Positions 19,030 through 64,000 of a stretch of DNA of 64,000 nt are shown here, in pieces (within the stretch, counting starts at the first letter, position 1; each line of letters starts with the position of its first letter). The stretch comes from Bugula neritina. Lineage: Eukaryota; Animalia; Bryozoa. The notes below the pieces were generated by a model. That model was not told the DNA's origin and did not search any database. It saw nothing but the letters and a program-made list of their open reading frames with translations. Position numbers and translations under genes: made by a program. Where the stretch lies: contig OZ037766.1 in the NCBI GenBank assembly GCA_964035545.1, positions 30,432,773-30,496,772 of the forward strand, in the 5' to 3' direction.

Positions 19030-22000
19030 ATGGCTGAACTAGGATTTGTGATGGGTAAGTTAGCTTACCAATTTTAATTTTAAACTATTCTTTGAACACA
19101 TTGGCAATGCTCTAATTATATTAGTTTTCGATTTTTAAGTCTTTAGTTTCATTGCTAGTTTCCTTTGTTAGAAGCTTTCAAGAATAGAGTAATAATTATG
19201 TCTGTTGAATTTAATTGATTGAAATGTAGGTGTTTGTTGGGTTTAGTACACAGGGTAATGTAATTATGAGGTTTGAGTCAACCTGTGACATAATGTAATT
19301 AGGTCAAATTCTTGGAGCAACCAGAATTTAGGGCTTTATACAAAGAGGGGGTAGCTCTTTCAATAACCTGCCTTATGCTCCAGGATTATATAGTCATTAG
19401 AGTTCACGTTTAATAAGGTTTTCTTATTAGCACATCTTTAACAACCAGCAAAACACATTTTATTGATTCACCATTTTTATTCTTTCAGGCAATGAAATAA
19501 AAATTTTAGTGCTTTGTCTACAACAGAGACTTTATAATATGTGCATTTGTAAAGTTTAAAGAAAATATTGTAATAATATCACAGTGTTTTTATTTTATGT
19601 TTTGATATTATAAATGAAGGCTCTGGATATGTCACATGTATTTTATTCAATTAGCATTGCTACGTTCTACATTTCTGCTATGTTATCTGATAACTCTGTT
19701 TAAAGGGGGGTTGAGCTACACCTATGAGAATGGTGTTACGAGTACCGATCCATTTCCACCATCAAACGATCCTGTCATTATTCTAGGAAAGAGATACAGT
19801 TCATTTTTTGGTAAGCTATGCGAAAAATAGATTTACTGATATCTGTGTCTAATACGTTTCGAAGTAACTTGTCTCCAGGGTTGGTGTTAGTGTACAGCTT
19901 CTATATGCTTTGAATTTCATGGTCTAAATAGTAACCAATTACTGACTGAGTAAATATAATAACTTCATTGTTGGTATTGAAGTTGTTTGTCAACTTTCTA
20001 AATATATTTTTTGGCAGATCATAAAAAGTTGAAAAAGGTTGTTCAAACACTTCCATGGTTCACCTATAGGAAAGGATTCAACCCCATAGGTGGTACAGGT
20101 AGGTTACTAGGTGGTACAGGTATGTTACTAGGTGGTGCAGGTATGTTACTAGGTGGTGCAGGTATGTTACTAGGTGGTGCAGGTATGTTACTAGGTGGTG
20201 CAGGTATGTTACTAGGTGGTACAGGTATGTTACAGGTGGTACAGGTAGGTTACTAGGTGGTACAGGTAGGTTACTAGGTGGTGCAGGTATGTTACTAGGT
20301 GGTACAGGTATGTTACAGGTGGTACAGGTAGGTTACTAGGTGGTACAGGTAGGTTACTAGGTGGTGCAGGTATGTTACTAGGTGGTACAGGTAGATTACT
20401 AGGTGGTACAGGTAGATTAATAGGTGGTACAGGTAGGTTACTAGGTGGTACAGGTAGATTACTAGGTGGTACAGGTAGGTTACTAGGTGGTACAGGTAGG
20501 TTCTGAATATCTACGTATTCTTCATATTTATATCTGCTGTTATCTATATTTATAGTATATTTTCTGTATATCATTATAATATATTGTCTATTTTATTGTT
20601 AACGGATTTTATTTATCTTTTTCTGTAACTATTACTGTCTATAAACACTACAGCTATTATTCCAATCTATTTCTTATGATATAATGTTTATGTATTACTG
20701 TCTATAGTATCTATATACCATATTCTATATCTATGTTATAGTCTATAATATCTATATATCTTACTCTATATCTATGTTATAGTCTATAGTATCTATATAC
20801 CATATTCTATATCTATGTTATAGTCTATAATATCTATATGTATTACTCTATATCTATGATCTACAGGCCCGACGTCAGACCAAGGCTGGGGCTGCATGTT
20901 ACGCTGTGGCCAGATGATGCTCTGCCAATCTCTAGTCAACCTTCACCTTCCTCCAAGTAAGTAAACAAGGTCAAGGTCAGTTTATATACTCGCAAGCAGC
21001 ATGTTAAAGTCAAACTAGACCATATATTACACTAGATTGTTACTATACGATATTGTTACTATACTCTATTGTTACTATACTATATTGTTACTATACTAGA
21101 TTGTTACTATGCTATATTATGGTCACTATACTATATTGTTACTATACTAGATTGTTACTATACTCTATTGTTACTATACTCTATTGTTACTATACTATAT
21201 TGTTACTATACTATATTGTTACTATACTGTATTGTTACTATACTATATTGTTACTATACTATATCATTGTTACTATACTGTATTGTTACTATACTATATT
21301 GTTACTATATGATATTGTTACTATATTATATTATGATGCAGATTGGACCTGGTCTATTGATAGTCTAGGAGGGAATCCTGCATACAGAAAAGTTCTGGAT
21401 ATGTTTTTAGATAAGAAATCCTCATGTTATTCCATTCACCAGATAGGTGAGTTAATTCTGTAATATTTGAGTTACTTCTTTTGAGTTTTGAGTAGTTTCT
21501 TTGCTTTTGTATTTATTCCAAGTGTTTAATTTGTCTTGTCAAAGTTTTACAGCGGCTGTTTCGTATTTTGGGTAATAATTTGGTTTTCTGAGTTTTTCCA
21601 AATTACTTTGGTGTGCCATTTTTTATTTACTAAAAATATATACAAATTTCTGAGATGACATTTAAAATTTTGCATTTTCATATCAGCTGAAGCATTTTTA
21701 TGCAAGTTGGTTTCAACTTTCTTGGTCCATAGTTTTCATTAATTACTATTCAAGACAGTTTTTTCAAGTGTACAAAATTTAAGTTTCACATTTCACAAAG
21801 TAGCTGAAATTTTCTTCTGTTTTTAAACTTGTATAACTCTGTTTTGTTAGTGCTTTTTTAGAAATATGTTTTTATTTTCCTTTATTTCAGCGTCAATGGG
21901 GGTGGCAGAGGGCAAGAATGTGGGTCAGTGGTTTGGTCCCAACACGGTGGCGCAAGTCTTGAAGTAAGTTAGGAATAAAGAATTTTTTAGAGAACTTATT

Positions 22001-25000
22001 GTTCTTATTAAACTGTTTGGACGTATTGTTTTGCTTTTGTCAACCTTTTTAATGCCGTTTCTTTTTTTCATACATTCTTTAGCAATTTGTATGCGTATTT
22101 TATACATTCATCCTGTATTTGATTAGTTAACTCGAAATAGGTTGAATAAATTGTGTTATCCGCTACAGATATCTGAAACATTTAAAGTGTTTTCAATGGT
22201 TATACACGACGTATTCCCATTGAGTAAATGTCATTAAATATGGTTGGAAAGTAAATTTCCCTGCTTCCGGTCTCAATAAAGGGAAGTATTGGTGTTTAAC
22301 TTATTGTAATATTGAAGAGGCTTTTCTAAAAGTTTATTATTAAATATTGAGAACATTTGACTCAACTAGCTGAAGGTGTGCAGGTCTAGATGTATTCTAC
22401 TCATCAAATGAGCTCCATTTAGTCTGTAAGTAACTAATGTTTATCTTATACACAGGAAGTTGACTTCTTATGACGACTGGAACCAGATTGTTATTCACGT
22501 TGCCATGGACAACACTGTAGTCATTGAAGATATCAGTAAGTAGAAAAAAATTTTTTCTTCTTAGGTTAATGAGTTTTATTGAACTGTTTTACTGTTCACT
22601 TATAAGACATCCTAAATTATCATAGTCATCACAATATTAAAATTTGCTAAATTTTGCTATGTTTAAACTTGGTTCAGATATGTAATTATTAAACTAATCT
22701 CAACATTGCCATAGATGATAACACTCATTCATCTGTTTGGGTATTTTAACATTTTCTGAAATTTTTTCAGTTTGGAACTGATTAGGAAACAATTAGCTTT
22801 AGTAAATAAATATTTTATAAAATATGTTAAAACACAATATATCTTTTTTATTATAACAACCTTTTGATTGTTTTTTTCATGGAATTGTTGAAGTAATAAC
22901 TCTCCTCCCTCTGCCATGTTTATTTAGCATACTCTTTTATTTCAACAGAAAAACTGTGTAAGACGCCACACACTTCCAGCGGAGTAAACCTGCAGTTTGA
23001 ATCAGACACCTCAATAACCACGAGTTTGTACAGGGACCCCAATCTATCTTCCCACCTCTCACCACATACTAGCCTCACGTCCTCAGCAAGTTGGGATGGG
23101 CACGTGTGGCGCCCTCTCCTTCTCATGGTGCCTCTCAGACTAGGATTGTCTTGCATCAATGATATCTACATGAGAAGTCTCAAGGTAAACAAATTAAATA
23201 CACAAATACGTCTATTCAGAGAGTGGAGAAGCTACATGCATTTTACTGGCAATTTTTCATTTCAATGAAGCTATTTGAAATACTGATGCAACTCATGCAT
23301 TCATTTTTACTTTGACTATAAACTTTGTATGACTGTCTTTTCTAGAAATTCTTTGAGTTGCCATATACGGTCGGAGTTCTTGGCGGGAAGCCAAACCACG
23401 CCCACTGGTTTATTGGTTACACTGGTGAGCAGACGACTCTCTATCTCTCTTGCTATTGGGTTTTTTTTCCAGATTCACCATTGTTATACTATAGGTGTTT
23501 TTGTGAACAGCCAACAGCATTTTGTTTTAATCTGCTTTGCTAGACAAGTAAATAAACATTAAGAAACTTTTATAGCCAAATTGAATTTCTGTTTATTGAG
23601 AAAGCCTTGCATTTCATTTCTGTTTTTATGTGCCTGTTGAAGACCTACTTTATGGTACTTTGTCTTTATGCTGTTAGTGTTCAGTTTTGTAGCTGATGTT
23701 GTTTATATCGTTGCCTAGGAGACGACCTTATATTCCTTGACCCACATACTGTACAGCCAATGGTAGATACCGATACTCATGATGGATTATGGGACGACTC
23801 CAGTTATCACTGCACTGCAGCCTGCAGAATGAATATTTCTAACTTGGATCCAAGTGTAGCTTTAGTAAGACGATTGTTGACTAATAAGACTAAATGTTCC
23901 TGGTATTCTAGGTCAACAGATTGACATACAGTATTACATATTATATATTCATTAGTCTGACTTGCTTGTATGCTTTTCAACTGTTCTTCTATTGTTACAT
24001 AAGATCACAGGTGTAATGCTTTACAATGAGTGACACTACTTTAGTATTTGGGGCTTTAGCGATCAAAAACCTGTCAACTATATACTTATTGCATATATTC
24101 TTGTTTGGAATTATCATTGGTAATCATCATAATAAGTTTAAGTTGACAGAATGTTTATATAACTGCCATGCAATTTATGCAAAGTGGTTGCAGGTGTTTG
24201 TCTATGCTTTGACTATCTGCTAGTTATAATGTTTAGATGTTCAATGCAACACATATGTAAGGCCAATCAGCTACTCCAACACACATGTAGGGCCAATCAG
24301 CTATTTTAACACATATGTCTAGCCAAGCAGGTGCTCCCTATCAATGCTAATATCACTCAGACAAATAATTTTGGCTGCAGGGCTTCTTCTGCAGAACGGA
24401 ACAAGAGTTTGATGACTTAGCCCAAATTCTTCAACACGAAAAGAATTCAATAGCCCCAATGTTTGAGGTGTGCTTAAAGCGTCCCACACATTGGCCTCCT
24501 CTAAACACTGGAAATCCTCACGGCACAGACACAGGTACGTTATGTTTTTCGATATAGGAACTTCTGAACAATTTCTGATTTTAAATCATGATTTTTTTTT
24601 GTAGTTGGAGTGTATTTGAGTTTAGCTAAAGCAAGTGAAGCTGCTTTTCACACTTCTAATGGTTTAGTAGTCAATCCATATTTTTTTTAATACGAATTAA
24701 AATATAGGAAATTGTCTGCTCATGCAGTTGATAGTCTCAAATCTCCCACAATCCTGAGTTATTTTAATATTAGAATTAGCAAGCATCTTGTTGATGTTTT
24801 GATTTTCATCCTAACAACTCTAATCTGAAATTCTTAAGTTTCGCCTCTCCTGTCATAGTTTTTTCATTTTAAATCTTATGAAGTATAAATCATTATTTCA
24901 AGAGGAGATAATTTCTCACACTTGAGGTACTCTTCAGTTACCAGCAAAATTATGTGAAGATTCATTTAAACTGTATTGGATTTTTCAAACCTGCTTTATT

Positions 25001-25301
25001 TTCTTCAGTTGTTGGTCTATTTTAAATACTATTTGATGCCAAATTTGTTGCCCCTTTAAAAATGTCATCAACATCAACAACAATTTTGTACTCAAATTAA
25101 TAGTGACAAAATATGGTTAGCTATTAACAAGTTTGTCTAGCAGAGTTCATATATATTTTGTCTTTAAATGAAATATTTTTTTTAATTTTAGAGCCCTTGA
25201 TCTTAACTATTGTGTAATAACATAAGTAATTGATTTTTTCAGTGTTCACTGTAGTACCTTCTCCAAAGTATGATACAGATGACGAATACGAGCTGGTGTA
25301 G
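19030..25301 (+). CDS. ATG4: Cysteine protease ATG4 (ATG4A/B type), about 410 aa
   Basis: Twelve coding exons: 19030-19054, 19706-19810, 20018-20098, 20867-20956, 21342-21446, 21891-21963, 22456-22535, 22949-23184, 23346-23424, 23719-23864, 24381-24534, 25243-25301. Motifs: WFTYR, catalytic Cys in TSDQGWGCMLRCGQM, WFGPNTVAQ, PLRLG, GGKPNHAHWFIG, catalytic Asp/His in FLDPHT, DPS. The C-terminus is an acidic LIR, DDEYELV*. Confidence 0.95.
20087..20502 (+). repeat. 21-bp minisatellite (~20 units) spanning and reiterating the ATG4 exon 3 donor site
   Basis: Unit TAGGTGGT(A/G)CAG|GTA(G/T)GTTAC. The first unit overlaps the exon end, and two units are 1 nt short. Confidence 0.95.
20699..20860. repeat. 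~41-bp AT-rich tandem repeat (~4 units) abutting the ATG4 exon 4 acceptor
   Basis: Repeated TATAGTCTATA(G/A)TATCTATATA...CTATATCTATGT. Confidence 0.8.
21020..21332. repeat. 16-bp minisatellite (TATTGTTACTATACTA)n in ATG4 intron 4
   Basis: About 19 units ending just before the 21342 acceptor. It generates the spurious Y/L/I-rich ORFs in the track. Confidence 0.9.
24247..24331. repeat. 30-bp repeat, ~3 degenerate units
   Basis: CAACACATATGTAAGGCCAATCAGCTACTC repeated upstream of the 24381 acceptor. Confidence 0.7.
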
Positions 25302-26195: not shown

Positions 26196-29100
26196 CTACA
26201 ACTTTTCTGGAAACATCATAATTGTGCTCTTACTCTCCAGAGGAAGTAAAGCGTCTGCCATTGCCTGAGTTTGTAGGGAGATAAGACCACCTAAAATGGA
26301 CACATATTATAAAGTGTCATCTCTATAAGTATTACTGGGAGGATGTATTTTTTTCAATCCTAATATTATTGTTTATGTTAGTTTACGATATTTGTTTGTT
26401 TATGTCAGTAATTCAGGCAATGAAACTAAATATGGAAAATTAGATGACAATTCATCTTCATTTAATATTTGCTTTCAAACATTAGCTATACATATAATAT
26501 ACACAGCTTCACTACCATAATAATCTGCTTGCAACACTCACGCAAGTTTATAGTCGCTATCCCTGTGAGAAACCCCTGATAGAAAGGGTTTTTGTTAGAA
26601 CGGGCTAAGGACATGTTCAAATGAGGCACAGGAGCAATTATGACTGGATGCTCTTCCTAACATCACCAATGGCCTTTGTCGGGGTTTGAACCCACGACTT
26701 CGTGTTCACAAAGCGAACGCTCTAACCCCTAGACCACGGCTGCTCCCTAATCTGCTTGCAACACTGATCTACGTTTAAGATTTCTTACAAATTATAATCT
26801 ATAATAATCAGACTTTACACATGCTGCTTCAATTAAAATAAAATTCCTCTAATTTTATGTTTTAAACAAATTATTACAATAAAAGTACAACAGTTTTACC
26901 CAATGCCAGCCTCACATATAATCACCAAACATGTATTAGTGTTGACATTTTAACAACACAATAAATGTTAAATAATAAGAATAATATAATCAATATATCA
27001 ATCAAATAAAATAATAGAATAGGGAACTATTTCCAACCTGAATACAAAAATAAGATTCGTCTCCCCTTGAACACTTCAGGTTTGTTCTGTAGAAGCTGAC
27101 TGAAGCCGTAGGCAGCTTTGCCTGTGTATGCGTTGTCCAATAAAATACCGGTTTCGTGAGCTGTGCGTACAATGTACTCTACAACATTATACACACAAGT
27201 ACACTGACAAGTGAGATATTGAAAGGTATCAGTAGAAACAACACGTGTCAGAGTTATATATGTTATATATCCATAACTTGTATAACATCATGCCTCAATG
27301 TTTTATCTCCTCGTAATGTCAAGGTCGTACACTCACCTAACTGATAGAGTGTCAAGGTCGTCTACTCACCTAACTGATAGAATGTCAAGGTCGTATACTC
27401 ACCTAACTGATATGGATAGTTTTCACAGTAAGCAGGTCCCTTGTAATCCTCATACATGGTGACCAAATCTTCACTCCTCACTCCAGTTATACCCAGAGAC
27501 TGCATGTTCTCATTGATTTCATTGTGCATGAATTTGCTGTCTGCACATACAAGTATCCCGTGGCATCTGCATCGTATTATCGTATTATAGTAATACATAT
27601 ACAGTGTTATAGTATTACAGTATTATAGTATTATAGTATTACAGTATTATAGTAATACGTATACAGTGTTATAGTAATACATATACAGTATCACATACAA
27701 TAATTTTATATAAAGTATTATTTGCAGCAAGCACTGTAGGTGTGCCTACAATATTATACAGGCTTGCAAAGACTTGATCTATTCAAAGTGATGCACTTTT
27801 CTAACTATTAAATTTTGATTTCCAAAACTATCTGGAAGAACAACATTGCAGTAATACTCAGATAATAATGAGAAATATCTGCAATATGGATTTCGACCGC
27901 AATTTATTCTTTTTAAAATAATATTGTTCAATATGTCTGATTGCCTATGAATAAAGAGTAATAAGAAACAAATTTCCAGTCTTTTTACAAGTTTGACTTC
28001 TTTTACCATTAGTTTTCGTGTCAAAATAATCGAAGAGAAAGCATGTATTCCTCAAATGGAATGCCCAAAGGTCATAAGGTCACGTAGTCGAGAGACGAGA
28101 CTTACTTGTAGGGTTGTCCTGCCAGATAATTAGCTATAGTTAGTCCTGCAACAGTTCCCCCTGTAGCGCAGGTAACCACCACATCATCAAACTCTATTCC
28201 CTGCAACAAGTAAACACTCAACCATACTAAGAATCTCAACAACTTGTCTGAAATTCCTTTTAATTAAAATATTTTTTTTGCAATTGATTATTTCATACAG
28301 CAGAAAAACTGGTCATATTAAGGTAAAAACAGGTCAGGAATTTACGTGCCTCCTGATTTCTTACCTGTCTACTGATTTCTTACCTGGCTCCTGATTTCAT
28401 CAAAGCACTGAATGAACCCCCATAGACCAATCTCATCAGATCCACCTGTAGACACCAGTTTTGACTTCTCACCAGTCTCTCTCCTAAATAGATGTCCCCA
28501 AGAACAGGTTTCTTAATTATGTTATACATAACTGCAGAGTATTAATTCAGTTTAGCATTCGTCACGTATATCTAGGGTGAAGCAAGAACTAATGCTAGTT
28601 TTCTAAAATGATTTTTTTTCTAAAACTTAGGTTTGATGACGCAAGTTCTCAATTAAATTAGAATATCTCTTTATATGGTAATTGCAGTTTAGAAGCTAAA
28701 GATACCATAACAGTTCAACATAATTCAGGATTTTAACCTAGCTCCAATGTTATCACCAGGTTAAGGAGAGGTTCACTTGAAAGCCCTGACAACCAACAGT
28801 CTAAAGTGAAAAAGCTAGAATGGGAGAACTCACTCTATTTTGTCAGCTAACATTTGCATCCTGGGTTTGATATAGTCCTTGTAGCCTCTAGGTCTAGGGA
28901 CTAGGTATATATTAGCACCACAGAGTCTGTTGATGAACAGGTTTCCATCGTATTTTACTTTAGACACATCCTACAACAGTGAAGGTGACAATGTAACCAG
29001 TGTTAGTATATCTACAGCTATATGCAGCACTACATGCAGTGTCTTAGTTTTATAGAACAACTCTGTAATGCAGACATTGCTAGCTTCAGACAACTGCATG

Positions 29101-31653
29101 ACAAAAGCTAATTAATCATTATTTTATATTTTTGCTGTCATCGCATTTCATCATCTTTTTTATACAAATGTAAGTGTATTGCATCAGCAGTTTACAAACA
29201 GTTAAATAGCCAATAGTTTTCTGTAGCATGTACAGCTATGTGCAACATGCACTGTTATCTGTAACATGCGCATGATTGTAGTGTGCTATATAATATGCAT
29301 TACAAACATAGGATCTACATAGGCTATTTATTAAGATCTATAATATCTACGTAGTACTATAATTTACACTATATACCTAGATCTAATACTGTTCTATAAA
29401 CTATGTACTTACATCTAAATAACTCTCGAGGAACAAATGACTTTTTAGCCCAAGTTCTGCACACGCAGCTGCTGTGGCTCTGCAGTGGTTACTCTCAGAC
29501 GTGCCGCAAGTTATAATGTGTTTGCATCCTTTCTGAATAGCATCAGCTATGATGAACTCCAACTTTCTTATCTACAATCAAATACATTCATTTTGTACAA
29601 GACAAGGTGAGTCTAATATAATATAAGTTCAACTAGTGTACAACAAACAGTCTAGTAGAAGGTGTAAGAAGACTGCAGAAGGCAATTGTTTTATCTCATT
29701 TACCACAGAAGTCTTCTCGGAACTTCTCTGGCTCTCATCCTTGAGATCAAAGGTCAAAAGATGAATAAACTAATCAAACTAGTTTGCGTCGCCAGTCATT
29801 GCATGTTGTCAAGAAAACAGATTTCAAAACATGGAGCTTAATTTCTATTGATTGAAAATCATTACATTATTTGTTTCTAGCTTGTCTGAATGATCTACAG
29901 TAAGTTGATTGGAACTTCTGAAAATGTGAGAACATTGCGAGGAGAAACCTGTTGTTTGTAGCAGACATTAAGGCAGAATTGATATTCATATATTTAGTTT
30001 GTCTATTAGAGATGCAATTAAGTGATAGTCCCTTCAATTGTTTATGTTTCATCAACACAATTTAGTAAATCAACTTAATACATGGCTATATTTTCCTGGA
30101 CTCACGGGTGAAGTGACTGCTCAGTTTAGCTATTCACTATGATGAACAGAAACCTGTTGCAACATGTCATAACATTGACATTGATCATGTGAAGTGTTAA
30201 CTGAAAGCAGAGCTGTTAGCCTTAACATTGGCGAATCTTAAGGAGCTGCTAGTAAGACTAGTGCAAGTTTGGTTTTAATTTATCACATGCATGGAGTATA
30301 TCACATGGTAATAGTTTAAAGTACAACTTTGCTTGATACTGTTACTGTGAACAATTTTCATAAATTCACTCATAGACATATGCACACCAACAGTGTCCTT
30401 CATTGTTTAAAATGAAACTAATTGAAAAAGTTGTCCATATTTTATTGATAACAGATGGCAACTTGCCAAAATCTAGTTTAAATCAAATTGTCTTCAAAAC
30501 AAATTAGAGTACTGTGTAACATCTGTATGAATCGTTGCTCAAAGATGCTTTTAGCAAAAAAGGTGTGAGCAAAGGCAAGCCAATGACATTTCAGCAATTC
30601 TTGAAGGCTTAGACTGAGTGAATAGAACTGTAATTTTACAAGATGAACTGGATTGGTTACTCCCTAAACGCCATGAAGCATTCTTACAATTTGAACCTGT
30701 TGATAGAAGGTTTGTGGTTGGCTACACTATAAAATACATAAAGTAATGTCTCTCTAACAAGGCATTTGATTGGACGTTACCTTAGTTCCTGTAAGTGAAC
30801 ATCCAGTTAAATCATCTCTTTTAATATAAACTTCTACATCTTTAGGTGCTCCTGGAAGTGCCCACCTTGTGATCGGCGTTGGAGTCATTGTCAGCTGAAA
30901 CAAAATCATGACGTAGATATCAATAGTGTGAACAGTAAGACAGTGCTTGAACATTTCTTCCACATAATATCTTTATAGTAGGGTAAACCTATAAGTCAGA
31001 TGATATGAGAAAGTGCTAGCCAAGGTGAGGGATATTTTTATAGCTATTTTGTTAGGTTCAAGGGTGGAGCATTCTATAATCATGATAGAATAGTCTAGCA
31101 TTGGAGTTACTGAAGGGCCACAACTCCTAGCCACTAAAGCCCTCTGGCTAAGATATGCACCTCTTTCTAATAAACATCAGACTGTAAATTAATGTTTCCA
31201 TTCCAAAGGTGTAGTTCACTTTGTTCAGAGCGCATGAAGGGACAAACCCTGGGATATTTACTAACTTAGAATTTAGGTGATTGCGCATTATTTTCGTATT
31301 TATAAAGAAATTAAAATGGTGCATCTTTTTAACTAATAAAAAAGGAATGACTTTAGTACATGCCAAGCTATACAGTATTGGATTGAGTAAACACAAGATT
31401 TTTCAGTATCAAATATAAAGTTATAGTAATACAGCATTGAATTGTTTGCTGTGTTGTAAAACACTAACATTTCTGTTGGTTGCAAATGAAAGTGACAATA
31501 TACTAACATTGAAACAACCATTTAGGAGTAACTTATTTTGAGAAAAGCCTGAGCAACTATTGCGTTTGGGCTTACGTTTAATTTTCCTGAGGGGATGTAC
31601 TTGAGTGCCCGTGCCCATTCCGGTGCTCTGTAAGGAAGAACTTTGTGAATCAT
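26196..31653 (-). CDS. D-cysteine desulfhydrase-like PLP enzyme, divergent paralog D, 360 aa
   Basis: Exons 31576-31653 (MIHKVLPYRAPEWARALKYIPSGKLN), 30781-30894, 29413-29571, 28834-28970, 28384-28483, 28106-28200, 27403-27566, 27038-27178, 26196-26290, with the same intron positions and phases as B and C. Motifs: IKRDDLTG..TGTKIRKLEF, SNHCRATA, TCATGGT, DNAYTGKA, YSGG. Confidence 0.9.
26539..26747 (-). mobile_element. tRNA-derived SINE, 209 bp, in intron 8 of paralog D
   Basis: The minus-strand head has a Pol III A box (TGGTCTAGGGG) and B box (GGTTCAAACCC). It is flanked by an exact 18-bp TSD, TAATCTGCTTGCAACACT, at 26521-26538 and 26748-26765. Confidence 0.85.
27315..27412 (-). repeat. 33-bp triplication of the paralog D exon 7 donor site
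   Basis: Minus-strand unit TATCAGTTAG|GTGAGT..ACGACCTTGACA.TC, with GT donors at 27401-2, 27368-9 and 27335-6. Confidence 0.9.
27574..27695. repeat. AT-rich 8-mer-based repeat (AGTATTAT/AGTAATAC) next to the paralog D exon 7 acceptor
   Basis: Visible periodic tatagtattacagtattatagta run. Confidence 0.65.
28342..28398 (-). repeat. 19-bp triplication of the paralog D exon 5 donor site
   Basis: Minus strand GAAATCAGGAGCCAG|GTAAGAAATCAGTAGACAG|GTAAGAAATCAGGAGGCAC|GTAA, with GT at 28382-3, 28363-4 and 28344-5. Confidence 0.8.
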
Positions 31654-34246
31654 TCTCTCTCCTCCTTTCTGTCTTTCTGCTCCAACACAGAGACTCTATG
31701 CAAGGCAACTTACTGGCACCTATAAACAAATATAAAATTCAGGGAATAAAATAAAAACCAAGGATTCTAAAAACACAAGCTGGAAATTTTAAAACCCAAT
31801 TGTATCTTTTCTTTCACATGTCAAGAAAATTTTATAAACAATTTCAAAAAAAGAATATTGAAATAACTTTACTTAAAATTTGTAAATTAAGGGAAGGAGT
31901 TAGACTTAAAATAACTCTTATATGTCATTATATGAACTTGATTGTAGAAAGTGTGTGGAACATTAGAATGTTCGCACAATTGTGTTCCATAGAGCATAGC
32001 TATAAAGTGTTAGTCATAAGTTCTAGATAGCAAACGCAGCCAAGACTCTATGTCAATAATTTGGTTATATTGGAGTTTAATGTGGTTTTTTGATCACTAA
32101 GAATTACCAGTGACTAATTAGCATATTAGTGCTGGGTTACTGAACCTCACTCAACCAGTCTATTAATCTACATGTATAATACCGAGCTAAAAATAACCAC
32201 TTTACAATATTTCTTATCTATCTTGGAATTCCCCAAATAACATTACAAAAACAAACCACGCAATCAGCTGTATGTATTAGTACTTGACCCATAAACAAAT
32301 TTGATTAAATCATTCAACACCTCAAGCCTATAGCTATCAGAGTTCACTGTTTGCCTGTCATGGAAAATTTCTATCACTTACTTCAATTCTGATGGAATAT
32401 CACTAAGGATGTGATAAAGTTGAAAACTATCCAAATAATGCAGGTTCTGCAGCCCAATGTCGTTAGCCAACAATCTAAATGTTATCACACCGCTGTACGA
32501 AATATCAAATGAACTTTCAACAGTCTAATTATAGATTGTAGCTTTGAAGTAACAGGACTGCAGCGTTAAGGTATATTTCAACAGCTCAACCAAATAAGAG
32601 CTGAAATACAATCTCTATCAACTAATACATGCTACAGCAACTAGTTATGAGCTGTCTAAATTCTTTAAGTTCTTGATTAGTGAAAAACCGGGGTATGTGT
32701 ATGACCAAATTGAACAGAGCTTAATGTACATACACCTGGTACACAATAAGACTAATTTAAATTGAGAGACTACCTCATTGCTCAGAAAGTAACACTATAC
32801 CTGTTCCAACAAGACAGAATAACAATAAAAATACCACAATGTTATTGAGCTATACATGTAAAGCAAATTAGCTAACTACTAATTACTATAGTCAGGGATA
32901 TGATCAATGAACAGTTAGCAGTGGTCCACTTACTAGCAGTAAACAAGTATGTATGTACTTTATCTAAGATAATACTAGCTGACGATATTTGTGATAGCGC
33001 AATAAGGCCAAGGCTTTGGCCTGCAATTATCCTGCACAATATTAGTAAAAGCTTCATAGTTAGGCTTCTGATAAACAGAGTAGAGTATATATACTATATA
33101 GTCATCCTATGTATACAGTACAGAGTGGAAATAACTACCCACACCGAAAACTGAACCTAAAACTTCTAATTTGCACAACACTACACAAAGTAGTGATGTG
33201 TTTACAGTGTAGAGTAGTGATTTGTGTATAGTAAAGTCTTGAATAGTGGTTTGCAAAGAACATCTGCAGGAGTGACTTTTAGCAATTGACTGGTTTAACT
33301 CACGCACTAATTGTAAAAGCACCTCGTATAGTCATTATGAATGCAATAATTTCTACTAATGCTACTAATAATACGGTATTGTCAAGATCACAAAAGCAAT
33401 GCTTATGGATGAATTACAAAAAGTATAAGTATGACTATGACTATAACTATAAGTATAAGTATTACTATTAGTGCAGTAGGTAACTGAGAAGTGACACTAA
33501 CAGTAGGTACCTTAACTGGGCATGGACTAATAACTGGTATGACTATCAGCTCTATATATACTTACAGAGTATCAGCCCAACGTTTAGTGTTATATCAATA
33601 TGAATATGCCGTGCAGTGCGACTACTTACTCCTGGAAATTATTGAAAGCAACTGCAAGCTACTGCAACGTGCTAACTAATGCTAACTGCTAACTTCCCTT
33701 CCAACAATCGGCATATCCATTCTTTTGTTTGCTCGCCGCCAGCAAACCGGTTCATACTAGTTGAGGAAAGCCGCTATGCACTTAAATGATTGTGGGCGCG
33801 GCTGTAGTCTAACCAATCAGGGATTAGAGTGTTGATCATAATAAACAAAAATAAACGTGGTAATAAGTGCGCAAAACACGTATTAGCCCTGGAGTAAAAA
33901 GTGCTTTCAGTTGTGAACATAGTTGTTGTTGAAACTGATCCAGCAAAATCAGATAAATAAAGAAAAAAGTGTTTCTATTTTTTTAATATTGAATGCTCAT
34001 TTTTAATAAGCTGTAAGCAATAATGGCTATATTTTCAAAGCAGGCAGATAATGTTTCAGTAATACAAGGCTAGGAATAAGGACCAGTTTGCGTATAGATT
34101 GTAATTTGTGCATAGAAATTCTGTGAAAACACTTGATTGGTTGATGTGGTTTCTCATACAGACCGCAAGTCTAATTGATTAATACTATAGTAGTAGCATA
34201 ATTTCTCTTTATATAAATACATCTACAGTACATTCTATTGGTTGAT

Positions 34247-40783: not shown

Positions 40784-42887
40784 CGTTTAGAATTCTGCCA
40801 CATGTGTATTCCACTGTAACAATGATGTAAGAACAGCTTAATTGTCGACTGTCAGTGTTAACACTCCTGTAACTTGTTTGCACATGTCACATTTCTTCAA
40901 CTGTCACCTGCTACTCGAGTAGATTATATTTATTCAACTACAACTTTACCTGTAGCTTAGCTGCATCTGTCACATTTGATAAGTTACATCATAGTTAGTA
41001 ATAACTCTGACATTGAATCAGTTACATTGCAGTCACTGATGACACCTGTCACACTCTTTCAATTACATTACAGTGATGACACCTGTCACATTTGACATGT
41101 TACATTATAGATAGTGGTGGCACCTGTCACATGAGCACTTTACTAAAGAATTACCAGTTGCTCAAACAATTAAATACCTTAATTATCACTATACTATTTT
41201 TAATATAATATTATGTAGCTATATAATATTTTAGATGTGATAATATAACCAGTTTATAAGTACATACGAACGATACCTACCTACTCACACTTCTCCTTGC
41301 TTGTGATGCTATTTCTCCATACAACCTGACCTGTAGCTAACTATTTTATCAGACTGGCTTGTTTGGGAGGATACATTGCCAACCATACTGCTATTTAACT
41401 TCAGCTTTATTGAGGAAGTCAAATATTATTCTAGAGGTTGATGAGATGTATAAATAGTGCCTGAACTTGCTTGGCGTAATGGGCTTTAATAAGATGTAAA
41501 CTATTACTTAGCTTGGGTGTCTAGAGTTTAGCTTAGCAGTGATGTTAGGAGTCAGCCTGCCCTACCCTACCTAAAGGAATATTTGTTTATTCTGCAACTA
41601 TTGCTCTGATAACAAATCTACAGCTTTATAACACCTACCTCTGATAAGTTGCATTTTTAAAGTAATTGATTATAAATAAACATTTTAGTTTACTGATCGT
41701 ATAATTCAAATCTGCCCAACAAATTTGATATTATAGAAATGAAATTTCAAAATGAAATAATGAAACAATTTTGGTGCTTGTTTAAATTTACATGTGCAAC
41801 TTTTTATATTTATAGGAAAGCTTCAACTAAATTAATTTCTTAAATTGAAAGCTTATAAATGCCCTATGCTGAGGATGGAATTCATGACTTTAGACCTAAT
41901 ACTGAAGTGCTAAAATGCTTCATGTGCAGAATATTTAAATTTATTTGATGCTGAAAGATTATTTTTATAAGTTTATTTTTAAAATAAATAATTGTGAATA
42001 ATATTATATTGAAATAAAGGCTCATACTTCAATACTTTTTTATCAAATTAGCTGTCTTTCTATAATCATCTGTAATTTATAACCTCTGATCTACAAATAT
42101 CTGCTGCGTTAAGTGTTGGGTCATAGTTTTTTTATACTTAAAACACATGAGCCTGTTACATATCTTATTTTATATCTCATTATATTACACTCATTATCTT
42201 ATAATAAAAGTTTTAATATCACAATATATTTACTTTAATATGAAACCACATAACGCAAAATATATTATAATTTATATTATAACACAGTGTACTACTAGAA
42301 TTCTATATACTGTATTAAAATGTATGTATAATATAATATGTAAAAGCAAGTTTAATGTGCTTTATCAGTGATTCGTAGAAACGCATTCTCTTTTTAATTT
42401 AGCGACAAACTAAGATGTTGGTATATATTATATACCCTTTATTGGTCATTGTACGATGAAATCAAACAATTATGCTAACATATTACTGATACAATAATTG
42501 TATAAAATACATTAAAATTAATATTGTTGTAAATCAATATGTTCTATAAAATGTTATTATGCAAAGCTGAATCAGGAAGTGCCTTATTAAATGTTTTGTG
42601 AGGATAGAAATTCAAGGAATGTTAAATAACATAACATCTACATAACATAATAAAATTCCAACTTATATATTGGTGATAAAACTACCCTAAATATAAAATG
42701 TAGTTTCAGATAATAAACCATGAACACTTCATTTCTCTACCCTCACATTAATAATACTGTGCCTGTTATCTAACTAAACACTGGATGTATGTAGCACCAT
42801 AACAGTTTCTATTGTGATTAGACGTATCTATCAACAGCTGACCAAATAGCCTCAGCACCAAGTATAGCCTTATTTACTCACTTACTA

Positions 42888-46980: not shown

Positions 46981-47128
46981 CACGTGACCATGATAGTTCG
47001 TTTTTGAACACGTGACATATTGATTACTCAGCAAAATAGGTGGAGTGTGAATCATGATTATCCAATCACCTCACGAGTTACGGAATATTCTAGAAAATTC
47101 CAGGCTAATAATAAGTTTAGTATATAAA
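46981..47128 (+). promoter_or_regulatory. SQSTM1/p62 proximal promoter with clustered stress/autophagy elements and TATA box
   Basis: CACGTGAC at 46981-46988 and 47009-47016 (CLEAR/E-box); TTACTCAGCA at 47024-47033 (ARE/MARE-like); TGAATCA at 47048-47054 (AP-1-like); CCAAT at 47062-47066; ATCACCTCAC at 47065-47074 (SRE-like); gGAAtaTTCtaGAAaaTTCc at 47082-47101 (perfect 4-pentamer HSE); TATATAAA at 47121-47128. Confidence 0.75.
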
Positions 47129-47231
47129 CAGCTGCGTTAGTTGCTAGTGGCATACACCTGCTCTAAATCTAATACGAAAACAACAACATAACGCAGTCTA
47201 CACATTGCACATTACACTTCATCAATTCAAA

Positions 47232-51341: not shown

Positions 51342-56241
<4,900 letters not shown>

Positions 56242-56835
56242 CTTTAATTAAGACAAAAAAAACCTGAAAATATTAATTGCAATGAATCTTTTGTTAGAGG
56301 AAACATAAACTATGAATTGGTTAACTATTTTAAATATTCATGAGACTGTATCAAGAAACTATTCAATTTGCAAAGCTTTTTTTACAATAAATGATGCGAC
56401 AAGGATCACTATTAGATTTAGTATACATACAAACATTTTTCTCAGTTTGCAATGCCTTTGCCCTGTTCAGTTAGTTGATTCTATCACTATTAATACAACT
56501 ACAGGAATTAGTATATCACTACAAGCATACATAACAGGTTTCATTATTCAAATAAATCTACTTAATTCATTAAACAGTTACCCATAGATTTAATAGTAGC
56601 CACAAGAGCTTAGGCTTTGGTGAGTCCAGTCACTATTTAGTCAAATTCAACTTAACTCTAATAACTTTTAGTTTTAGTCTTTAGCAGCAACCTTTAATTT
56701 CTTTGCAGTTGTTAGGGTTTTCATTATTTGAATTACTATGTTCCTCTTTTAATTAAACTTACGATTGTCATAACTCTTAGTACTAAGCACCCATCATTAT
56801 GATTATGACGCAATAATCAGTAATGACTAACACTA

Positions 56836-56960
56836 ACAGTCATAGTGCCAATGGTAACCATAATCATAACATTAATAGTATTAGTATTAGTATTGAGTTA
56901 TACTTACAGTTAAGTAACCGTTAATGTTATGATTATGGTTACCATTGGCACTATGACTGT
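56836..56960. repeat. Perfect 40-bp inverted repeat with 45-nt spacer upstream of p62 paralog 2
   Basis: ACAGTCATAGTGCCAATGGTAACCATAATCATAACATTAA (56836-56875) and its reverse complement (56921-56960). Confidence 0.85.
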
Positions 56961-57339
56961 AATAGTAATAGTAATAGTAATAAATTTGAAAAAGTATACT
57001 CATACTGATAGTCATAGACTCATGGCATTTGCTGATTGGCAAATGCACTAATGACTAATAGTAATTTAAAAAGTAAAAGTAACGTTAGCTTAGTCATTGT
57101 CAATACTCAAATTCAAAGTGAAAGTGAGTCATAATCATAATGATAAAGTTTAACTGGTGATCACAAAGTTGGTATAGTTTTTCATCAATATCCACCAATA
57201 GTAGCTAAATTATATCATAACAGTTGTATAACTGTTATTATCTTAGCTCATAGTAATACACACAAATATAGGTTGTTTGAGGATAGTTCGTGCTGACACG
57301 TATTTTGTATAAAATCATTGCAAGGTGACAAGCACGGGA

Positions 57340-57950
57340 GTATTGGTAAACAAAGACACGTGACTTAAAGCATGAGACCAACCTTTAAAAGTCGGATACA
57401 TGAGAATACTCGCTGATAAGATAATCGCAGCGAAAATGCAAAAATATATTACTAGTAGTCTAGTACATAGTGAAATTTGTAGAGTTGTCCTCCTAATTAC
57501 TCTATAATGGTTCTAATGTTTCTCCAGAAAACCCACCACTGCAGCTTTTTCATATTGTATTTTTTATTCATTTAACTCATTTGACTAAAATTGTTTTCAA
57601 ATTACACATTTTCCAGTTCAATGCTAACCACACTCATGTCCATCATTACTGACTGATTTAGACTGTAGAGTTATCTCTCTTAAGCTTTACCCACTTAAGT
57701 GAAACATAAGGAATAGCCTGTGTTACAATAATGTTTATCAAAGAACACAAGTCAACAGATCATACCAACGGGCAAAATATCGTAAGCGGTTATTTCATTC
57801 GCATAGCCTTCACCGAATGGCACCACCTGCGATTCCACACGCTGATTGGCTAATAAAGTGTTGCCACTACTAATACATGAGTCACCAATTAATAGTAATA
57901 ATATACGGTAACGTGGATATACTAATTAGTATTACAATTAGTAAACAAAT
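57340..57950. promoter_or_regulatory. Putative divergent promoter region between p62 paralog 2 and SREBP
   Basis: Relatively CpG-containing segment with GTAAACAA (forkhead) at 57346 and 57941, CACGTGAC at 57357-57364, CTGATTGGCT (NF-Y) at 57842 and TGAGTCA (AP-1) at 57878. The TSS positions are not known. Confidence 0.5.
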
Positions 57951-58132
57951 AAATATACCTAAACTCTATAGCTACATTGATTTCGAGTGGTGTAGGAAAA
58001 TATTCAAAATTGAATAACTAAGGAATGACAAGAATCTACGTTCACTGTTCACATTGACATTGTGATTGTGATTGAGCTTGAATCATTATCATTGATCTGA
58101 TGAAATGATTGATAAAACTAAGTCAAAGTGAT

Positions 58133-61100
58133 ATGAATAATTTTACCGGTATGTTCCATTGTTTGGTTTTTAAATGTTTTTTTATTAAATTAATTATTTT
58201 TATTATTATGTAATCATAACTGCAATTCTAATAGTAATACAATACTTGGAGTTGGTATTTCGTAATATTAACAATAAATAACTGTATCACACTCTGACTC
58301 TAAGATCAGTACGACTATCACTATGACTATCGCTGACACTATGACTATCAGTGTCACTGTGAGTATGACTATGGCTCTAAATATTAGTATGAGTATCACT
58401 GTCAGTATTACTATCACTATCTGTAATTGTAACTGTAAAAATAACTCCCAAGAGTAACGCTAACAGTAACTGTAAGTGTATCACTGTAAGTGTATGATAC
58501 TGTATGTACTATAACTAAAATACTAAGAATGACATTATTAATACTAATAGTAATACTAATGGTAAAACTAACAGTAAAACTAAATTTTATGGTAATACTA
58601 ATGCTAAGCATTGGTAATACTTATTTACTACTACTACTACTACTAGTACTACTAATATTAGTATCAAAATAGCTATTATTATTAGTATTAGTACTACTAC
58701 TGCTACTAGTACTACGTCTACTAGTACTAGTAAGAATTGTTAAGTGGAACACTAGCAGTAGATCTAATACTAATAGGAATATATTATTACTATTAGTAAT
58801 AGTAATAATATATTACGATTGGTACTATTAACAGTCCATTACTATTAGTGTTAGTATTACTATATTAGTATTACTATCAATACTACTATAACTAATACTA
58901 TCACATTTACATAACCATGATGAATAGCTTAAAGTAACTGTTTTATTGATATTCATATTAGAAAGCTTTCATTATGATTATCTTATAAATAACTGCAAAA
59001 ATATTAATTTTAACGATATTCATATTTTTACCTAATGCTTATTCTTATTGAGTTAGTTGTGGGTTATTGAAATTGATGTAAATTATGTTAATATTGAGAA
59101 TATTATTTATTTCTATTTCAATTTAAATTTCAACTAAATGGTGTCCTAATTTTGTAATTAAATTGAAATTGTGTTTTAATTTTTACTCGAACTTGGCAAT
59201 GATGACACTAACTGTTTTTGATTTATATAATATGTCTAAAGACACTGTGATTAGTAAGTGTGTCATTATGAGTATAGGCCGGATCAGTATACACCGAGTA
59301 TCAGTTTGAGTAGCTGAAGTAGAACAATGTAAGTGTGAGTAGAATAAGATAGACAAGGACGTATACAAATACTTTTTTCTCATACATTAGCCAAATGAAC
59401 TTTCAGTTGACATTAATACAACTGAAGCGGTTTTTGAGCTCATTTTTATTTTTTCTACTGAGAAAATGCCTATGTTTGGCGTGTGAATTAGTCATTGACT
59501 TTGACAACCTCAAATTGGCTTTAGAATGGAGCACTTGCTGATTTTTTGCTCTATGTAGTGCGTTTAAATGTAAATAAGCTTTGTAAGGTCAAACAGTGTA
59601 TCGTTCTCAGATTGGTGGTTTATTACTTATTACCAATTTGCTTAAAATGGTATTCTTTTTTTCCTCTTTACATTTGTCATCTTTATTATTTTTTAGATGC
59701 TTTAGAATCGTTTGATAACTCAACTGTCAGTGAAGATCATTCGAGTATAAACATGAGTGACGGTAAGTTTTAACTGTATTTTATATTTCGTGGTAATATT
59801 TGTTTATAGTTTTATACTGCCAGAAAGTGATTGTTCAGGCTACATTGAAGTGCAGCATGTATAGTAAAGTGATTTACTGTCGGGAATATTTTTCCCTTAT
59901 ATGTTGTTGCTGTGTAAATTCTCTCAGCTTCAATGAATGAGGGTTTCATGATTACTGTGAATTTAGTATTGAGAAATTTTGTTGAGGTCTCCTTACGCTG
60001 ACTTTAGTTTATATTTTATTAGCATTTTACTCGAGTGGCGGCAATGAGAATGACCTTCACATGAGTTTGGAGGCATCGCTAGCCTCCGAGTTTGACTTCT
60101 TGCAGTATGCTGCCGACAACTCGGATGTTAAAATGGAACCTGGCAGCTTTGATGACATCATAGATGAGGTAGAGTTCTGCTAGTTTTTAGCACTTACTTG
60201 CTGTAATGAAATAGTTAGAGTTGTCTTCTCTTTGAACTGTAGATGACTATATACTATATAGTGTGGGATATTGGCAACTGGTTGAGATATACAAATATAT
60301 ATATTTGTAATTGTAATTTGTAAAAGCTTTTTTCTCCACATGTGGAGAAAAACTTCGAACCTAAATATGAAATTGCTCACTTATTTACACTCTGGAATAT
60401 TCATCAAGTTTAGCTAGGCCAACTGTGTTACGTAATGCAATGTTGTGCTAGTGATAGCCATAACCTTAGTTATATTTACTGCATGTTTTATGCAGCTGCT
60501 GGTACAAGACACCTCTTCACTCTTTCCCGTGAAGGAAGATTCCATGCTGTTTTCTCAACCAGCAGTTGACAGCCCGGCTGAAACTATAGTGGTGGGTTGT
60601 TACGCAAATTATATGTGTGTGTGCGTTTGTGTATGTGTGCGCGTGTGTCTGTGTGCGTGTGTGTGTGCGCGCCCGATATGTGTATATATATATAGTAATC
60701 ATATTGTTGAAGTAAATTTTTTATTTAAACTGAAAGTAGATAATTGCAAATTTTATTCTATTATAGAGTCCAATGGAGGTATTGGGCTGTGATACAGTAC
60801 AGCAATCACCTCTCAACCATCAACTGTCTCCACACAATCAGCAACCACACAACCACCTGCTGTCACACCCTCACCAGGTGCTCAGTGAAAACCAACCACC
60901 TGCTATGCCAGCTGACATGCAGGGTAACATATCACACATACCAGCTGACGCAGTAGGCAGCATCAATGTTGGTCAGCTCACCGTAGATCAACTTAAGCAG
61001 GTTAGTTAGTTACTAGTTTACTTTAAACAGCTTTGCTACAGCAATGAGAATATCTTGCACGTCTAGTGAACTATTTTAGTCGGCAGCTTATAGTAATACT

Positions 61101-63285
61101 CAGTCTTTTCTCATTACTCTGATCCACTTGACGGAGAAATGTGATGTATTTAGGAGTTAACTTCCAATTGTGTTCTTTGTGAAATGGTAGATAACTCCAA
61201 ATTTGTATAACTAGCAGAGTGCAATTTTATTCTAATTCTTGTATGCATCTTTTAGGAAATTTCTAGAATTATTACATCATTACTATGTTGTGACAACTAT
61301 TTTATTTTCTATTACTAATACTTTTGTCACAACACTATTTTGTTATGTCATAATATTGAGAAGAAATTAAATTATTTTATAAAACTTTTTGTGATACGGG
61401 CTAGCATGTAATTAGACGTATAAATTAGGAGCAGTATTTTAATATTTTCTCAAAATAAACTCAACCCTGGCTAAAGGTATGTAGATTATAATATCTGTAA
61501 GGTATGTCTTTTAGATTTTAATGCAATCAATGCCAGCCGCGCCTGTGGTCCACAACACACCTCCAGCCTCTCTTTCTATTCAGAAATCTACACCCACTAT
61601 GGCCGCGCTTCTCCTCAACTCTTCTAATTCTCAGTCTATTTCTCCTGGAACTGCCAGATCTACTGTGACCGCACCTCAAAATATTAACATAACTCCTAAG
61701 GCTAACATTACTTCTACTGGTAAGTATATCTGAAGCATCTCATTGCTGTGATATTTCCTGTGGAACATTTTAATATTACCACAACATAATAAATATATAT
61801 ATAAAATATCACATTCATTATATCACTTTGGCTTTAACAACTTACATAATATGTGTAAATCTATTATTAGATAATTTGCTAGAATAATTTAAAAGTAACC
61901 GTAGAAAGCTGTGAAATTTCGTACACACTAATTTTGTATATATCTAAGTCAGCAATGTGATGTCGCATGATCACGTCATACTGATAACAAATATTGTGAC
62001 TCAAACTTGTTATATATGATCCCCTAGTACTTCTTTACACTTAACTGGTTCATATAGGATAACATTGTACTATCCTGTAGTTCTGCCGAGCAACAATCGG
62101 CAGCATGCTGCTGCTACAAGCTCCGCCTCCCCTGTACTGCCCACTGTCCGAGTCTTACCTGCTCAGACTCAGAAGTTGTCCTCCACTTCTAAGGCACAAA
62201 CCCCATCTATCAGATCTGTATCTGCATCCGTCACTAGTATGGTCGGCACCCCTCCCGTCACAACGCTATCCGTCACTGATTCCAGTAAGATAGCCATAAG
62301 TAAGAGCAAATCTCAGTCTAAACCGAAGGAGAGGAGGTCATCTCACAACATCATAGAGAAGAGGTACTTAATAGTCAGTGTAGAAGTACTTGGTAGTTAG
62401 TGTAGAGATACTTGGTGGTTAGTGTAGAGGTACTTGGTGGTTAGTGTAGAGGTACTTGGCACTTAGTGTAGAGATACTTGCACATAGTGTAGAGGTACTT
62501 GCACATAGTGTAGAGGTACTTGCACATAGTGTAGAGGTACTTGCACTTAGTGTAGAGATACTTGCACATAATGTAGAGGTACTTGGCATATAGTATAGAG
62601 GTACTTGTTGGTATTAGATGTGCAGCTGTTACTAGCCTCTAGAGTTGTCCCATTTTGCGCAGGTACCGGATGAGTATCAATGACAAGATTATAGAGTTGA
62701 AGGACCTTGTGATGGGTACAGAGGCTAAGCTAAACAAATCCGCTGTCCTCAAAAAGGCTATCGAGACTATTCACTCCCTCCGGGACCAGAGAATGCGACT
62801 GTCTAAGGAAAACGCCATTCTCTCGTCTGCCCTTGCCAATCAGGGCATCGACACGAAAGAGGTGAGCTGTGTTCGCATGTGACAAGTCTTTAGGTCTAGT
62901 CACGCAGTCATTCTATATCTTAAGGGTTTTCATTTTCTGATATGAAATACATTTCCTTTTAATAATTCTCCGTTTTATTCATGCACGAAGCGCGACACTG
63001 CATAAGGGAAGTTGACGCATTCTATTTCCTGTTTCAGCTGCTGTCAGGCTGTCTGTCTGACCCCTTGACCCCATCCAGTTCAGACGGCAGCAGCTTCTCC
63101 CCGGAGACACTGCTGCCCGAGAGCCCGCCATATTCATCGGGCGGGGAAGGGGAGGATGACATGCTCCCTGCACTGCCCACCTTCACTACTCACACAATCT
63201 ACACTCCCAGCACTGGCATGGTGGACGGAGCTCGTATCACGTTGTTTGTCTTCATGTTCGGGATTCTCATCTTCAACCCGTTCAG
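58133..63285 (+). CDS. SREBP: Sterol regulatory element-binding protein, N-terminal part (gene continues beyond the window)
   Basis: Exons 58133-58148 (start uncertain), 59697-59762, 60023-60168, 60496-60591, 60767-61000, 61515-61719, 62081-62363, 62663-62861, 63038-63285. It has an acidic N-terminus and a Q/S/T/P-rich region. The bHLH-Zip reads [45 protein letters not shown], with the SREBP-diagnostic basic-region Tyr. LTPSSSD is degron-like, and TM1 [20 protein letters not shown] carries the NP site-2 protease motif. Confidence 0.93.
60614..60672. repeat. Imperfect (TG)n microsatellite
   Basis: tgtgtgtgtgcgtttgtgtatgtgtgcgcgtgtg... Confidence 0.8.
62361..62607 (+). repeat. 21-22-bp minisatellite reiterating the SREBP basic-region donor site
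   Basis: Unit TAGTGTAGAG|GTACTTG(CACA/GTGGT), about 11 copies, starting at the exon end GAG|GTACTT. Confidence 0.9.
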
Positions 63286-63913: not shown

Positions 63914-64000
63914 GTTATCTGCATATGTGTTACGTTACGTTATCTATTACATAAGTTAACTCTTAGCATAGGAGAGTGATTCTCACAAAACTTGTCCAGC

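Follow-up and report, generated by a model that had tools for sequence, protein, structure and literature searches.

We have analysed a stretch of 64,000 nucleotides from the bryozoan Bugula neritina (genome assembly deposited as GCA_964035545.1, contig OZ037766.1), which is called here the window, and in which the part between 19 and 64 kb carries seven genes: ATG4, a pyridoxal-phosphate (PLP) enzyme of the PALP family, a CUB-domain protein, a FUN14-domain protein (FUNDC), two paralogs of p62/SQSTM1 (p62-1 and p62-2) and SREBP. The order and the orientations of the seven genes were found to be as the initial annotation of this DNA had stated them, and the Pfam and PDB matches of the exons agree with it. 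It was also correctly recognized there that SREBP stands head-to-head with p62-2, since p62-2 occupies 51342-56241 on the minus strand and SREBP starts at 59753 on the plus strand. We consider this stretch of 45 kb to be probably a composite, made up of an ancient p62-SREBP pair, an old inverted duplication of p62 and the chance neighbours ATG4 and FUNDC, and not a single cluster. The gene models are our own exon-by-exon reading of stop-to-stop open reading frames (ORFs) against Pfam and PDB, in which single, unspliced exons were searched, and the features are as follows.

19030-25301, plus strand: ATG4 (C54 cysteine protease), from Pfam, PDB and motifs
27030-31740, minus strand: PLP-enzyme (PALP) gene, copy 3, from the ORF/Pfam reading
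34250-40886, minus strand: CUB-domain protein gene with no relation to autophagy, from the ORF/Pfam reading
42888-45216, plus strand: FUN14-domain gene (FUNDC), from two FUN14 profile matches
46981-47128, plus strand: p62-1 promoter elements, from a motif scan
47232-50206, plus strand: p62/SQSTM1 paralog 1 (p62-1), with PB1, ZZ, LC3-interacting region (LIR) and UBA
51342-56241, minus strand: p62/SQSTM1 paralog 2 (p62-2), with PB1, ZZ, LIR and UBA
56242-59752, no strand: shared 5' region of p62-2 and SREBP, with 3.5 kb between the two ATGs
59753-64000, plus strand: SREBP, continuing about 2.6 kb beyond the end of the window (L013:1305-2612)

Both p62 paralogs encode a PB1 domain, a ZZ domain, a W-x-x-I motif that follows acidic residues, and then a UBA-like C-terminus (MGFHDDG / MGFNDDC). 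The PB1 exons remain just short of the Pfam cut-off (E=2.5e-4 and 9.8e-5) because an intron splits the domain, the ZZ exons are matched in Pfam with E=2.8e-9 and 1.4e-8, and the ZZ exon of p62-1 matches the ZZ domain of human Sequestosome-1 in the PDB with E=6.7e-14. The candidate LIRs are DASWIKI at 49463-49483 in p62-1 and DASWVRI at 52345-52365 in p62-2. Broader homology searches with single p62 exons gave little: the 150 best matches of the ZZ exon, each with 2-18 matching stretches, were apparently multi-ZZ proteins and included no usable p62, and exon 4, searched against proteins of similar length only, had one match, a Joint Genome Institute (JGI) fragment of a sibling lineage of Bugula. 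Within its large coding exon p62-2 also has a 30-bp unit repeated 4.2 times (52536-52662), which forms a ten-residue repeat of the ADKLDQSG type upstream of the LIR; p62-1 has no such repeat.

The identity of SREBP is equally clear. Its basic helix-loop-helix (bHLH) exon has its best PDB matches in SREBP-1a (1am9, E=6e-18) and SREBP-2 (E=3.7e-14), the bHLH-Zip region is split over the exons 62020-62397 and 62643-62879, and the SREBP-type basic region HNIIEKRY could be read from the exon ending at 62397. Over the part that it covers, the downstream SREBP exon is 100% identical to a fragmentary protein of the 2020 draft annotation, P0153, named 'SREBF2 [Bugula neritina]', and the relatives found with P0153 are the SREBPs of a gastropod, a bivalve, an annelid, Ciona, spiders and vertebrates.

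The comparison between species was anchored on SREBP, by examining the contigs of the P0153 homologs around this gene. In the annelid Capitella teleta a gene for a PB1-ZZ-UBA_5 protein of 398 amino acids lies on the minus strand immediately upstream of SREBP, which is on the plus strand, and in the bivalve Tegillarca granosa a PB1-ZZ-UBA_5 gene of 476 amino acids has the same divergent placement upstream of SREBP. These neighbours are p62 orthologs, since they are matched in tblastn by PB1 exon 1 of Bugula (E=3e-13 and 4.5e-13, respectively) and by its ZZ exon (E=5e-13 and 8e-14), with additional matches in the YL..VGE..LEPLG region and, in Tegillarca, in the UBA. The 5'-5' orientation of p62 and SREBP is the same in Bugula, Capitella and Tegillarca. 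The annotated SREBP models of Capitella and Tegillarca begin at the bHLH, without the N-terminal third; unannotated ORFs upstream (L024 8514-10198 in Capitella and L025 8519-10698 in Tegillarca) lead from a Q-rich region into the bHLH, and a short first exon of the form MA..GW...LDGK in each species resembles that of the other (E=1e-5 in the pairwise comparison, with 37% identity). On this reading of unannotated first exons the ATGs of p62 and SREBP stand about 0.59 kb apart in Capitella and about 0.44 kb apart in Tegillarca. The SREBP loci of spiders were uninformative, as the genes are very large and have no neighbours within 10 kb, and in three eukaryotic contigs from Logan/ENA no p62 was seen beside their HLH gene. 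The adjacency of p62 and SREBP is non-random, and the pair is ancient and probably constrained.

The same linkage has been tabulated before. In supplementary file 4 of PMC8851819, as available to us, block 1900 is labelled 'Bilateria novel' (new at the bilaterian node) and lists SUPT7L-TTC29-SQSTM1-SQSTM1-SREBF2 on consecutive gene models in Lingula and p62-TTC29-SUPT7L in Lottia, with no gene orientation in the table. This block contains the SQSTM1-SREBF2 linkage of Bugula, and Capitella has genes of these four types next to each other, since beyond its p62 there are Bromo_TP and TPR genes, the domains expected of SUPT7L and TTC29. In contrast to the block, Bugula lacks the adjacency to SUPT7L and TTC29 and has FUNDC on that side instead. 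Its Bromo_TP genes were found at C2:21.7 Mb and C5:8.7 Mb, away from p62, so that the old block has been broken up in Bugula and only its p62-SREBP junction is left. Since gene order among bryozoans has been reported to be minimally conserved (PMC11789643), the survival of this junction is notable. PMC8851819 gives a tabulation only, with nothing on orientation, a shared promoter or a functional pairing; as far as we found, the p62-SREBP link is catalogued within the old block and no published discussion of it came to light.

The two p62 genes of Bugula are arranged tail-to-tail, with their stop codons 1.1 kb apart. In most exons the synonymous divergence (dS) between them is saturated (from 1.1 up to not computable), thus the duplication is old, and the non-synonymous divergence (dN) is well below dS, which argues that both copies are under constraint. 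The ZZ exons (48166-48307 and 48643-48879 in p62-1, 54123-53982 and 53493-53257 in p62-2) differ from this pattern: their dS is 0.16-0.18 and their DNA identity 93-94%, while the intron between them is unalignable. The simplest reading of these sequences would be that short gene-conversion events recurred between the old inverted duplicates and were limited to their best-conserved exons. In the PB1 exon p62-1 is closer than p62-2 to the genes of Capitella and Tegillarca; the head-to-head position beside SREBP indicates that it is p62-2 that holds the ancestral place. The two SQSTM1 models of Lingula were considered as a sign of a duplication common with Bugula, and this was rejected as unproven: the draft annotation of Bugula splits one p62 into two models, therefore the Lingula pair could be split likewise.

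It could be assumed that an artefact of assembly or annotation, a mis-join or a haplotype duplicate, lies behind the adjacency or behind the second copy of p62, and about 7% of the assembly is indeed unplaced; no positive evidence points to such an error and we regard it as hardly conceivable. In the 2020 draft (GCA_010799875.2; L023, VXIV02001528.1) p62-2 lies head-to-head with SREBP as in the window, and a JGI contig of the sibling lineage, about 87% identical in DNA, extends from p62-2 into p62-1's last exon, tail-to-tail. These two independent data sets share the arrangement, which rules out a mis-join, and the paralogs, with dS saturated in most exons, are too divergent for haplotypes. 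The draft contig and the JGI contigs L001 and L002 (3300002729, 3300003318) are about 87-89% identical to the window in DNA and probably belong to another sibling species of the B. neritina complex; lineages as close as these say little about selection when they have the same arrangement. In the 2020 draft annotation p62-2 is split into two models and SREBP into four.

The 5' regions of the two copies are dissimilar. Upstream of its ATG p62-1 has a compact promoter of its own, consisting of CACGTGAC at 46981 and 47009, a CCAAT box that overlaps the sterol regulatory element (SRE)-like ATCACCTCAC at 47062-47074, a perfect heat-shock element of four units (47083-47100), for which the expectation is 0.003 per 64 kb, and a TATA box at 47121-47128, 21 bp downstream of the heat-shock element. 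Judged from these boxes, p62-1 is predicted to be a heat- and stress-inducible copy. Close to the ATG of p62-2 there is no heat-shock element, CACGTGAC, CCAAT/ATCACCTCAC or TATA box. The window has three CACGTGAC boxes, and the third one lies at 57357 in the gap between p62-2 and SREBP, where a CTGATTGGCTAA box of the NF-Y type is also found at about 57843. Both boxes are kept in the assembly of the sibling lineage, a conservation that is not significant alone; likewise, a perfectly conserved island of 46 bp around the CACGTGAC at 57357 was dismissed as evidence, since at 86% identity a stretch of 3.5 kb should contain about 0.5 runs of this kind by chance. Possible acceptors of 5'-untranslated-region introns lie directly upstream of the ATGs of both p62-2 and SREBP.

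The other two genes of interest are ATG4 and FUNDC. ATG4 starts with the ATG at 19030 and ends with the stop codon 25299-25301, and four of its exon ORFs (21008-21460, 22900-23265, 23346-23540 and 23697-23921) match Peptidase_C54 (PF03416). The best of them, 23697-23921, has E=1.1e-12 in Pfam and E=1.8e-12 against human ATG4A (PDB 2p82), among matches to human ATG4A/B. The catalytic-Cys motif GWGCM was located at 20884-20895, the Asp-Pro-His (DPH) at 23739-23747 and DDEYELV at the C-terminus (25278-25298), with the stop codon immediately after it. As judged from these motifs, ATG4 is a C54 protease with the catalytic Cys, the Asp-x-His and a candidate C-terminal LIR, a feature known from proteins of the ATG4A/B type. 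A second ATG4 paralog is present on scaffold C5. The ATG4 gene of the window is nested in a tandem array of three PALP copies, all on the minus strand, between copy 2 (about 13.6-17.2 kb) and copy 3, while copy 1 is found at about 3.8-8.1 kb; copies 1 and 2 also come from the ORF/Pfam reading. Judged by eye only, the PALP genes resemble D-cysteine desulfhydrase/ACC deaminase.

The first coding exon of FUNDC (42888-42956) lies upstream of the ORF used in the initial annotation; exon 2 starts at 43395 and the stop codon is at 45214-45216. Exon 3 matches positions 10-35 of the FUN14 profile with 18.1 bits and exon 4 positions 36-55 with 14.7 bits; each match is below the cut-off of 22.5 bits, they are collinear and their summed score is above it. 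The FUN14 gene is single-copy in the genome, and a search of the ESM Atlas with a FUNDC exon gave zero matches. YDDI (43434-43445) is the sole LIR-like core in the N-terminal part of FUNDC, preceded by the residues IIAR, which are neither acidic nor serine, and it is a candidate LIR. Thus all four LIR-like motifs quoted in the initial annotation (DDEYELV, YDDI, DASWIKI and DASWVRI) could be found.

On human Xp11.3 the neighbours of FUNDC1 are KDM6A and EFHC2. The same three genes make up the microsyntenic block 2517, KDM6A-FUNDC1-EFHC2, listed for two hemichordates in the part of the supplementary table of PMC8851819 that was accessible. The FUNDC of Bugula belongs to the same family as that of block 2517, and it is placed between the CUB gene and p62-1 instead. 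The DM10 (EFHC) genes of Bugula are on scaffolds C4 and C7, which indicates that block 2517 is broken in Bugula and that the position of FUNDC beside p62-1 is derived. On the contigs C101, C96 and C66 intronless ATG4-like and DM10 matches with many in-frame TAA/TAG codons were also seen, and these fit ciliate contaminants.

The observations on the pair, on the paralogs and on their neighbours can be joined in the following history, which we have called a composite. The divergent p62-SREBP pair would date back at least to the ancestor that bryozoans, annelids and molluscs share, and it would persist most likely since both genes use one short shared promoter region, so that a break would damage both. 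Retention by a shared promoter is suggested by analogy, because conserved 5'-5' gene pairs as a class show an excess of co-expression (Irimia et al. 2012, PMC3514665). Like such pairs, for example HSPE1-HSPD1, p62 and SREBP are non-homologous neighbours in divergent orientation across phyla, and their gap in the annelid and the bivalve is very short; unlike them (PMC3514665), their shared promoter and co-expression are only putative, the gap in Bugula is 3.5 kb and Ciona is without the pair. In Bugula the pair would have outlasted the scattering of SUPT7L and TTC29, the remainder of the old block. p62-1 would have arisen when p62 was duplicated locally and in inverted orientation, long ago, and it has a promoter of its own of the stress type, with a heat-shock element, E-boxes and a TATA box; p62-2 would have kept the ancestral place beside SREBP. 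ATG4 and FUNDC were probably brought near by the extensive shuffling of gene order in bryozoans, as a coincidence.

Several points, on the pair as well as on its neighbours, weigh against this history. With 3.5 kb between the ATGs of p62-2 and SREBP, a compact shared promoter is not evident in Bugula. A short intergenic target could by itself keep a pair together neutrally, without co-regulation. In Ciona there is no p62 near SREBP, and the human pair is lost as well, SQSTM1 being at 5q35, SREBF1 at 17p11 and SREBF2 at 22q13. It is conceivable, though in our opinion unlikely, that everything in the stretch is neutral and that p62-SREBP is an unbroken ancestral adjacency with a tiny breakpoint target and no shared regulation. 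The short gaps of Capitella and Tegillarca (about 0.4-0.6 kb) and the losses in Ciona and human agree with this, as does the fact that lophotrochozoans in general keep most bilaterian blocks (PMC8851819). However, the pair survives in Bugula despite the minimally conserved gene order of bryozoans (PMC11789643), while the other members of the block are dispersed; the gap has widened to 3.5 kb in Bugula and is still unbroken; and the divergent orientation, in which pairs are co-expressed as a class (PMC3514665), was kept in three phyla. These observations argue against a wholly neutral stretch.

Concerning the neighbours, the position of ATG4 and FUNDC was checked only around the pair in two distant species (10 kb in Capitella and 25 kb in Tegillarca). 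The numbers also leave the coincidence uncomfortable. The initial annotation had pointed out that ATG8-pathway genes of three unrelated families are close together, and this is right: ATG4, FUNDC and p62 fall within five slots when the p62 duplicates are collapsed. Random gene orders were simulated with 20,264 genes, the number of protein-coding genes in the B. neritina annotation (PMC11480708), and it was determined how often some three of the marked families, each single-copy, came to lie in a row of 5-7 genes. With 40-60 marked families P was 0.001-0.006 and with 100 families 0.014-0.036, values at which chance is hard to accept on number alone; with 200 families P rose to 0.10-0.24 and with 500 it was above 0.8. 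The broad autophagy set of the Gene Ontology has a size of approximately 500. The gene-order test proposed with the initial annotation thus came out nominally small for 40-100 families and large for 200-500, and it should be emphasized that P is nominal throughout, since the pathway was picked after the genes had been seen, hundreds of pathway sets of similar size exist and 3,366 windows of the genome were read. Alone, it decides nothing on clustering.

The idea put forward at first was that the genes form a selected, co-regulated autophagy/lipid-stress neighbourhood, which bryozoans would have assembled from ATG4, FUNDC and the two p62 genes around the old pair with SREBP. In favour of it are the three unrelated ATG8-pathway families in 5-7 slots (nominal P 0.001-0.04), the FUNDC stop codon only 2.0 kb upstream of the p62-1 ATG, and the demonstrably non-random link of p62 with SREBP; we nevertheless hold such a selected neighbourhood to be very unlikely. 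ATG4 is separated from FUNDC by 17.6 kb and by two unrelated genes (PALP copy 3 and the CUB gene), and it sits within the PALP array. In Capitella the 10 kb around the pair hold neither a FUN14 nor a C54 (ATG4) gene, and none was seen in the 25 kb covered in Tegillarca; the conserved partners of FUNDC1 are, in the accessible part of the table mentioned above, KDM6A and EFHC2. Bugula carries its ATG8 genes on scaffolds C3 and C4, not on C2. In the flanks of ±100 kb the long ORFs, of which only seven were scanned against Pfam, short exons being outside the scan, showed no additional autophagy gene; these seven gave ankyrin-repeat, WD40 or exonuclease domains or nothing. No element common to the 5' regions of ATG4, FUNDC, p62 and SREBP was found among those scanned, namely E-box/CLEAR (coordinated lysosomal expression and regulation), SRE, FOXO, antioxidant response element, ATF4 site, the hypoxia element RCGTG and the heat-shock element; the CLEAR-type palindrome TCACGTGA has zero occurrences in the whole window. 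This lack of a common motif is weak negative evidence on co-regulation, as far as such a scan of sequence can speak to it.

Fungal and plant metabolic clusters and nematode operons, which also bring several genes of one pathway within tens of kb, offer a further comparison. Unlike them, the Bugula stretch has unrelated genes interspersed, mixed strands and none of the tested motifs in common, and its linkage is conserved for one pair only. A variant, in which p62-SREBP is a shared stress/lipid regulatory unit that captured FUNDC and ATG4 into one regulatory domain in the bryozoan lineage, appears to us a very improbable history. If it were true, it would be a rare case in animals of selection bringing the genes of a pathway together while gene order elsewhere was scrambled. 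Of the neighbourhood first proposed, the p62-SREBP link held in Capitella and Tegillarca and, by the accessible part of the table, in Lingula as well, and the links to ATG4 and FUNDC failed in Capitella and Tegillarca, where these genes are absent from the 10 kb and the 25 kb around the pair, respectively. Beyond a nominally small, uncorrected P the wider cluster has no support, and several observations are against it.

Some additional features of the region should be mentioned. Minisatellites with units of 16-32 bp in 11-20 copies occupy introns of ATG4, p62-2 and SREBP (20087-20502, 21031-21332, 54589-54952, 62360-62607 and 63516-63913) and produce long spurious ORFs. At 8601-9315 and 10297-11011 there is an inverted repeat of 715 nt, whose arms are 99% complementary and 981 nt apart, with weaker arms inside, and which could be either a transposon or an inverted duplication of recent origin. 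Both flanks contain several long GC-rich, retrotransposon-like ORFs (L004-L007, L009 and L013, by a crude coding score). Downstream of SREBP (L014-L017, G000:C2:30506773-30546772) lies a tandem array of at least 4 long intronless ORFs, one of which, L014, is an ankyrin-repeat gene according to Pfam, while the others start with near-identical sequence.

The results caution against accepting the larger 'autophagy cluster' on its appearance. If a shared promoter has indeed been kept for more than 0.5 billion years in several spiralian phyla, p62, the receptor of selective autophagy, and SREBP, the master regulator of lipids, were probably co-regulated already in early bilaterians; in vertebrates, where both genes are studied, the physical link between them is gone. 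Cross-talk of SREBP with autophagy has been reported, and the pair makes it open to direct test, with one intergenic fragment between two genes in several phyla. In Bugula itself the two p62 copies may divide labour, one of them with a heat-shock promoter and the other in the ancestral position.

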